From Bispira polyomma (Eukaryota), in assembly GCA_965649765.1 (NCBI GenBank), contig OZ287753.1, positions 11,594,001 through 11,658,000 on the forward strand: a DNA stretch of 64,000 bases, in the 5' to 3' direction. A program made the translations under genes and the position numbers. Positions within the stretch are counted from its first letter, which is position 1. The number at the start of each line of letters is the position of its first letter. The notes below the pieces were generated by a model. That model searched no databases. It worked only from the letters and a program-made list of their open reading frames with translations, and was not told the DNA's origin. Shown here in pieces: positions 17,787-18,140 of the stretch.

Positions 17787-17900
17787 AGTAAGGTCCCACC
17801 GAGGGAAGTCCTCCTGGTCCTGGGAAGCCACACGCTGGACATACTGACGGACAGCATAAGTACGGCTAGACTGTGTGCTGGACATATCAACCTCACTCAG
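17787..17900 (-). CDS. ChAT: ChAT coding exon 2 (38 aa, phase 0-0; internal ATG at 17885)
   Basis: ttttcttctcctttcag| LSEVDMSSTQSSRTYAVRQYVQRVASQDQEDFPRWDLT |gtgagt. Strong splice sites, elevated GC, and in-frame join to AGLPKLPVP of exon 3. Confidence 0.8.
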
Positions 17901-18140
17901 CTGAAAGGAGAAGAAAAAGTGTAAATATAGCGGTGAATAGGTGGACATATCAACCTCACTCAGCTAAAAGGAGAGGGAAAAGTGTAAAATATAGGGGTGA
18001 ATAAGCGGCATATCGACCTTACTCAGCTGAAATGATAGGAAAAAGTTTACACAGGTTGAACTATATGGGTGAATAGGTGGAAGAATGGGATGAATAAGTG
18101 AAAGTATCGGATGAATAAGTGGAAGTGTGGGGGTAAATAA
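17879..18140. repeat. Tandem repeat, 3 x 63 bp containing the exon 2 acceptor and ATG, followed by degenerate 21-bp subrepeats
   Basis: Acceptor trinucleotides at 17901-17903 (CAG), 17964-17966 (TAG) and 18027-18029 (CAG), each followed on the minus strand by CTGAGT(G/A)AGGT(T/C)GATATG. Confidence 0.9.

Follow-up and report, generated by a model that had tools for sequence, protein, structure and literature searches.

Tandem triplication of an acceptor and ATG at the first coding exon of ChAT in Bispira polyomma, one of many repeat arrays at exon-intron junctions of its genome

Introduction

Mammalian ChAT is known with N-terminal and 5'-UTR isoforms and has promoters downstream of VAChT. In the cholinergic gene locus, the first intron of ChAT contains VAChT (PMC3053374, PMC7524744). 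The locus described here lies on the minus strand of a window of 64,000 nt from Bispira polyomma (contig OZ287753.1, positions 11,594,001 to 11,658,000). It resembles the cholinergic gene locus in having an intronless VAChT ORF on the same strand and upstream of the first ChAT coding exon, and in having an acceptor before that exon, as expected if ChAT mRNAs splice over VAChT. In the described locus, a shared 5' exon is spliced alternatively to VAChT or to ChAT; the Bispira locus was compared with it at the level of DNA. The acceptor before the first coding exon stands in a tandem array, and this array is the subject of our analysis.

Three kinds of described repetition come close to it. Tandem duplication across splice signals has been linked to intron gain and intron sliding, as single events (PMC3265369; PMC2891723; PMC4974935). 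As in those cases, the duplicated splice signals here are competing, initially identical sites, one copy of which restores the original mRNA. The difference is that in Bispira an existing junction is amplified 2 to ~20 times, and this has happened recurrently at many junctions and in many genes. Tandem acceptors of the NAGNAG or TASS kind lie 2 to 12 nt apart and have one branch point and pyrimidine tract in common (PMC1669710, PMC8055015). Our locus likewise has tandem acceptors before one exon, with an in-frame spacing that could give subtle protein variants. Unlike NAGNAG sites, each of these acceptors has its own tract and candidate branch point, and the use of more than one of them is putative. 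We rejected membership in this class because the 63-nt spacing falls outside the range of 2 to 12 nt.

Minisatellites (VNTRs) consist of at least two head-to-tail copies of a 10- to 100-nt unit, and the array has 2.7 copies of a 63-nt unit. It is like them in its head-to-tail copies of graded divergence, with the youngest beside the exon, and in that sister arrays at duplicated loci differ in copy number. It is unlike them in that the unit is an exon-intron junction with a complete acceptor and start codon, and belongs to a class that is ~4-fold over-represented. Our search of the full-text literature found single-gene cases only and no description of systematic, genome-wide junction arrays.

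Results

Identity of the locus. Exons were searched singly (features are collected in Table 1). The intronless ORF that precedes ChAT exon 2 in the same orientation has as its nearest Atlas clusters those named "Vesicular acetylcholine transporter," and an acceptor-like site can be seen by eye ~260 nt before its ATG. No entry identical to this protein was found in the protein collection searched. The exon-3 peptide alone, searched against representative proteins, led to the 684-aa ChAT of the nemertean Tubulanus polymorphus. By pairwise BLASTP against residues 1 to 60 of that protein, whose N terminus is MPGTHPIREYFQRVEQENNDLYKQWDAS, the exon-2 peptide aligned to residues 4 to 26 with 8/23 identical and 16/23 similar positions (E = 3e-6). 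In Tubulanus, the first coding exon stops at the corresponding position, directly ahead of LPKLPVP. This alignment and the matching intron position identify exon 2 as the conserved first coding exon of ChAT and the ATG at 17885 as the conserved start. Exon 2 closes on a complete codon (phase 0) at a donor GT at 17786-17785 and is in frame with exon 3. The preliminary description had taken this for a ChAT locus whose acceptor competes with VAChT splicing and polyadenylation. Our searches support a cholinergic locus, with the VAChT ORF upstream and Carn_acyltransf exons downstream on the same strand. On gene order and orientation, the locus has the classical cholinergic arrangement.

Other features of this and related loci were seen along the way. 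At the Tubulanus polymorphus locus (L012 25621-27502), an MFS_1 gene follows ChAT in the opposite orientation, a placement that differs from the classical one (upstream, same strand). At least five to six Carn_acyltransf paralogues of Bispira are clustered within ~210 kb at C2:65.79-66.01 Mb. Within the window, the intron between ChAT exons 2 and 3 holds an N run at ~16.3-16.7 kb, and an ORF called at 16263-16733 translates mostly as X across it. The first ChAT intron holds a 20-nt array of 26 copies (TTTTTAACCAACACTACTGT) at 18908-19423, with a 79-nt higher-order period and without a link to any exon. No Rfam family was found across the whole 64-kb window.

Table 1. Features of the Bispira polyomma ChAT locus and of the junction arrays compared with it. 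Plain numbers are positions in the window; other locations carry the name of the sequence to which they refer.
Feature	Location	Strand	Basis or details
ChAT first coding exon ("exon 2"), 114 nt	17787..17900	minus	sequence, translation, homology
ATG of the basic ChAT protein	17883..17885	minus	conserved start; MPGTHPIREY (Tubulanus ChAT) vs MSSTQSSRTYAVRQY
Acceptor boundaries	17900, 17963, 18026	minus	read from sequence
ATGs	17885-17883, 17948-17946, 18011-18009	minus	read from sequence
Decoy unit B	17942..17965	minus	AG 17965-17964, making in-frame TAG 17966-17964
Decoy unit C	18005..18028	minus	AG 18028-18027; exon-like copy 18026-18005
21-nt array, 3 copies	18065..18125	minus	TRF and repeat search; borders the 63-nt array on its 5' side (gene orientation)
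Predicted peptide marking decoy-acceptor use			MSTYSPLYLHFFFSFQLSEVD
ChAT exon 3, 195 nt	299..493	minus	starts AGLPKLPVP; Carn_acyltransf profile positions 1-62
Remaining Carn_acyltransf exons	C6:11585088-11593707	minus	profile and homology searches
VAChT ORF, intronless, 556 aa	32393-34063	minus	MFS_1, E = 7e-36
Exon-3 acceptor array, 115 nt x4, 97% matches	431..888	minus	repeat analysis; tblastn finds exon-edge copies
Exon-6 acceptor array, 53 nt x4.8	within C6:11584001-11594000		
Exon-7 acceptor array, 72 nt x2.2	within C6:11584001-11594000		
Exon-7 donor array, 46 nt x7.7	within C6:11584001-11594000		
Late-exon donor array, 50 nt x6	within C6:11584001-11594000		CAG or GAG before GTAAG or GTGAG in all copies
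ChAT gene-body arrays, 50/46/72/53/65 nt	L003 (C6:11584001-11594000) 2211-2509, 6139-6517, 6692-6847, 7305-7549, 7680-7972		
C12 myosin donor array	L026 5500-6342		42-nt unit, ~20 copies, GTAAGT in nearly all
C11 myosin donor array	L020 775-1263		40-nt unit, ~12 copies
Mytilus californianus ChAT donor array	L033 ~15522-15707		31-nt unit ...AAAGATAACTGG/GTAAGTG (slash, junction), ~6 copies; exon end KDNW

Structure of the array. TRF reports a tandem repeat at 17879-18046 on the minus strand with a period of 63 nt, 2.7 copies, 86% matches, and 1% indels, and a repeat search places the three copies exactly 63 + 63 nt apart. Together with the sequence itself, these analyses confirm the earlier claim that the acceptor and ATG are triplicated at exact 63-nt spacing. 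Each unit comprises the last 41 nt of the intron and the first 22 nt of the exon, the ATG included. The intron part contains candidate branch-point motifs (found by eye), a pyrimidine tract, and the AG, after which every unit continues as CTGAGT(G/A)AGGT(T/C)GATATG on the minus strand, just as the preliminary description had it. The third, exon-proximal unit runs on into the open exon, which closes with a GTGAGT donor. In every unit, a donor-like GTGAGG or GTAAGG also occurs 4 nt past the AG.

The two upstream units, which we call B and C, differ in how closely they follow the true junction. The exon-like 22 nt of unit B (17963-17942) are identical to the true exon, and its ATG is in frame with the main ORF, adding 21 codons if used. 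The exon-like copy of unit C departs from that of unit B by several substitutions and a 1-nt deletion. Over the whole unit, 54 of 64 aligned columns match between C and B, and two compensating 1-nt indels restore the 63-nt spacing. By sequence, unit C is older than unit B, and the youngest copy adjoins the exon. The 20 nt before the AG hold 18, 18, and 15 pyrimidines at the three acceptors (manual count), and each unit has its own yUnAy motifs with an AG-free zone upstream. Thus, all three acceptors look competent, and some splicing into 17963 and 18026 may occur. The 21-nt array that precedes the 63-nt array has a unit related to the ...CCACCTATTCACC... portion of the 63-nt unit (repeat search).

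Presence of the array in DNA. A mis-assembled or collapsed repeat could in principle produce such a triplication. We compared the assembly with DNA short-read unitigs of two samples from one study. Unitigs covering 17668-18572 (sample S1) and 17737-18335 (sample S2) independently cross the entire array, each showing 0 differences and 0 gaps. Short-read depth over it is flat and single-copy. Both samples carry the same three units, as far as unitigs, which drop rare variants, can tell. We therefore rejected an assembly artefact, for which we see practically no chance. An origin from a dispersed repeat was also rejected, since the 63-nt array occurs once in the 1.035-Gb assembly and the 115-nt array at exon 3 is likewise unique.

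The surroundings are of a different kind. The flanks at 17300-17500 and 18236-18600 are very high-copy dispersed repeats, SINE-like, with unitig word depth hundreds to thousands of times single-copy and many loose ends. A run of 24 G with one mismatch lies on the plus strand at 17529-17552, which in gene orientation is ~235 nt past the exon-2 donor, and reads appear to be cut there.

Predicted products of the three acceptors. Translation of 17787-18026 on the minus strand gives LSKVDMPLIHPYILHFSLSF, a stop, and then LSEVDMSTYSPLYLHFFFSFQLSEVDMSS..., which reproduces exactly the three peptides listed in the preliminary description. Splicing at 17963 would add 21 codons in frame, with no stop between units B and A, the exon-proximal unit. 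From 18026, reading runs into the TAG at 17966-17964, which is also the stop of a 15-codon ORF opened by the ATG of unit C. For this acceptor, the peptide and the in-frame TAG had been called correctly. In place of a truncated protein, we predict that an mRNA spliced at 18026 would carry a 15-codon uORF (MPLIHPYILHFSLSF and stop) before the ATG at 17948, provided that the upstream exon is non-coding, which is the case in other cholinergic loci.

These predictions invite a reading in which the upstream sites are genuine alternative 3' splice sites, 17963 giving an extended enzyme and 18026 a uORF-damped mRNA, so as to tune the output or localization of ChAT. In its favor are the pyrimidine tract, AG, candidate branch points, and similar-context ATG at all three sites, the in-frame 63 nt with an open stretch from B to A, the two compensating indels that keep the spacing, and the parallel with mammalian ChAT (cf. 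PMC13163293). The hydrophobic part of the insert, LYLHFFFSF, is the polypyrimidine tract in translation (F, L, S, P), and a run of ~10 hydrophobic residues is too short for a membrane helix. The membrane-associated isoform that had been suggested is not supported. Tubulanus ChAT begins at the position of ATG 17885 and has no N-terminal extension. As for the persistence of spacing, AG, and ATG despite substitutions, it is plainly visible, as had been noticed, but it does not go beyond chance: at 84 to 94% identity, both decoys would keep AG and ATG with P ~0.3, and two 1-nt indels are estimated to cancel about half the time by chance. Also against this reading are the periods that break the frame at other ChAT junctions (115, 53, 50, and 46 nt) and the same architecture in unrelated genes. 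Taken together, we regard functional alternative acceptors as unlikely.

Another reading places a ChAT-specific promoter just upstream (e.g., TATATAAA at ~18170, minus strand), with the array transcribed as 5' leader. This TATA-like motif lies ~150 nt upstream of unit C, and mammalian promoters downstream of VAChT offer a precedent. TATA-like strings are, however, common at 32% GC. In addition, a textbook acceptor precedes the exon, and the boundary pattern equals that seen at other acceptor arrays, where splicing of the exon is a necessity. We hold such a promoter to be highly improbable.

Junction arrays elsewhere in ChAT. Among ~25 ChAT junctions, 6 bear junction arrays, and most of the periods cannot be divided by 3. 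The 115-nt unit at exon 3, itself not a multiple of 3, combines ~53 nt of intron with 62 nt of exon; two upstream copies retain the AG, and the most distal (most upstream) copy has AA. A further intronic array in the gene body (65 nt, 4.5 copies) contains splice-like motifs and is not tied to a known exon. The preliminary description had proposed that the extra acceptor copies could shift the ChAT:VAChT ratio. This proposal is not supported: like arrays stand at five further junctions of ChAT and in genes unrelated to it. A design that recurs in this way suggests a general genomic process and not a device of this locus.

Junction arrays in other genes. Acyltransferase paralogues have junction arrays on C9 (at a donor) and on C1 and C8 (at acceptors), and myosin genes have them on C10, C11, and C12, with up to ~20 donor copies. 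In the C12 and C11 myosin donor arrays, use of any donor except the first leads to a stop in the reading frame. There are three near-identical copies of one myosin locus (L020/L021 on C11, L022/L023 on C8, and L024/L025 on C13). Near-identical myosin loci have common junction arrays with unlike copy number, the 40-nt donor unit being present 11.9 times in one and 6.9 times in another. This difference implies that the arrays are dynamic.

We surveyed 30 loci, with Myosin_head matches as an exon sample. Pkinase matches were rejected for this purpose because the top matches were intronless multi-copy ORFs. Dozens of such intronless protein-kinase ORFs are present across many chromosomes: one set of 411 to 418 aa with near-identical scores is spread over at least 10 chromosomes, and another of ~345 to 356 aa has ~17 copies within C4:97.6-99.1 Mb.

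For the enrichment test, we took arrays with a period of at least 30 nt in 26 independent loci (314 kb) and, as the null, placed the founding unit at random. A known exon edge lies inside 15 of 74 arrays compared to 3.5 expected (Poisson P ~5e-6), a ~4-fold enrichment. The count includes one array (L013) that abuts an exon without containing the junction, and it is a lower bound, as many exons of the sampled loci are outside the hit list. In the 63-nt array and 13 others, exon edge and splice site are both part of the unit, and the added copies are found on the side of the intron. Across the 26 independent loci, ~1 in 10 exon edges is enclosed in tandem copies of its own junction.

A control based on coverage was set aside. 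Arrays cover 15% of 146 exon-hit edges, 11% of all bases in these gene-rich loci, and ~7% of bases beyond 1.6 kb, so that edges stand out by no clear margin; coverage is zero inside exons, 60 nt from the edge. We judged this null to be wrong because an array contains a junction only if its founding unit straddled it and cannot spread across one that the unit lacks.

Frame and retention of splice sites in the copies. The 15 junction arrays have periods of 63, 115, 50, 46, 72, 53, 40, 115, 55, 40, 53, 46, 78, 42, and 75 nt. Five of these 15 are multiples of 3, which equals the neutral one-third. Reading frame is thus not preserved in these arrays, and the 63-nt frame is no evidence of coding selection. 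Decoy copies retain GT at 0.96/0.93 (n = 27 donor decoys) and AG at 0.93/0.87 (n = 15 acceptor decoys) compared to ~0.85 at neighboring positions. The splice dinucleotides of decoys therefore appear to be neither clearly protected nor purged and, if anything, stand slightly above their neighbors.

These numbers bear on the possibility that junction arrays are selected as splicing aids. Extra copies could recruit U2AF/U2 or U1 close to the true site and thereby help exon definition in long AT-rich introns, or, in a variant of the idea, could be decoys with a slowing or regulatory effect on splicing. The excess of arrays that straddle junctions fits, as does the retention of decoy GT and AG at least as well as flanking bases. 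So does the finding that, in the 64-kb window, both ChAT exons within 14- to 17-kb introns have acceptor arrays, the same long introns being otherwise poor in such arrays. On the other side, with decoys of this number, retention is not clearly over background, copy number varies freely between duplicated loci, and the same junctions are without arrays in four other lophotrochozoan ChAT genes. We consider selection for splicing aids rather improbable.

Comparison with other animals. No junction array was found in the ChAT genes of Tubulanus, Mercenaria, Haliotis, and Capitella, and the status of Mizuhopecten ChAT is ambiguous. Mytilus californianus ChAT has one clear donor-junction array, which follows the counterpart of exon 3. 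The first coding exon of ChAT is without an array in Mytilus, Mizuhopecten, Mercenaria, Haliotis, Capitella, and Tubulanus. The orthologues compared are distant, the closest ChAT proteins being ~60% identical (Crassostrea, Mytilus, Owenia, and Capitella). Since the orthologues are mostly without arrays, the ChAT arrays are not conserved features of the gene. Junction amplification is sporadic outside Bispira polyomma but far more active here.

Discussion

Taken together, our data point to the 63-nt array as probably a tolerated minisatellite that spans a junction, one case of a genome-wide pattern, with 17900 as the productive acceptor and units B and C as decoys. On this account, a 63-nt segment would have happened to straddle the junction of the intron with exon 2 and would have gone through two rounds of tandem duplication. 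The process would be genome-wide, junction-spanning segments of 40 to 115 nt being copied head to tail with the extra copies on the intron side, and replication slippage or unequal exchange may be its origin. Acceptor 17900 would give the conserved N terminus from ATG 17885, and exon definition may favor this acceptor as the one closest to the downstream donor. Units B and C would be tolerated if their occasional use alters only the 5' leader or the N terminus and leaves the enzyme intact. Such arrays would then be nearly neutral.

The ~4-fold excess at junctions is not predicted by simple random duplication together with selection against exon disruption. Exon edges might be subject to a mutational bias, for example at the boundary between GC-rich exon and AT-rich intron, or extra sites might bring a modest splicing benefit. 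A mechanism that depends on germline transcription seems less likely, since ChAT is a neuronal gene.

A further reading is junction-linked amplification, in which exon edges are preferred seeds and the 63-nt version could be used meaningfully, for an extended or uORF-controlled ChAT. Seeding would come from a mutational mechanism linked to exon edges or from selection for extra splice-site copies, and real splice sites would routinely adjoin 1 to ~20 near-perfect decoys. We put this forward as a possible, tentative alternative to a tolerated minisatellite.

For ChAT alone, little depends on the array: no more than a minor variant of the N terminus or the 5' leader would result. For the genome as a whole, the arrays mean that a true donor can have up to ~20 near-identical donor copies after it, and open, conserved reading frames require that the exon-proximal one be chosen. 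The genome of Bispira polyomma is thus a natural experiment on how the spliceosome chooses among identical competitors, and it may help to show how alternative splice sites and new exon ends arise and how intron sliding begins.
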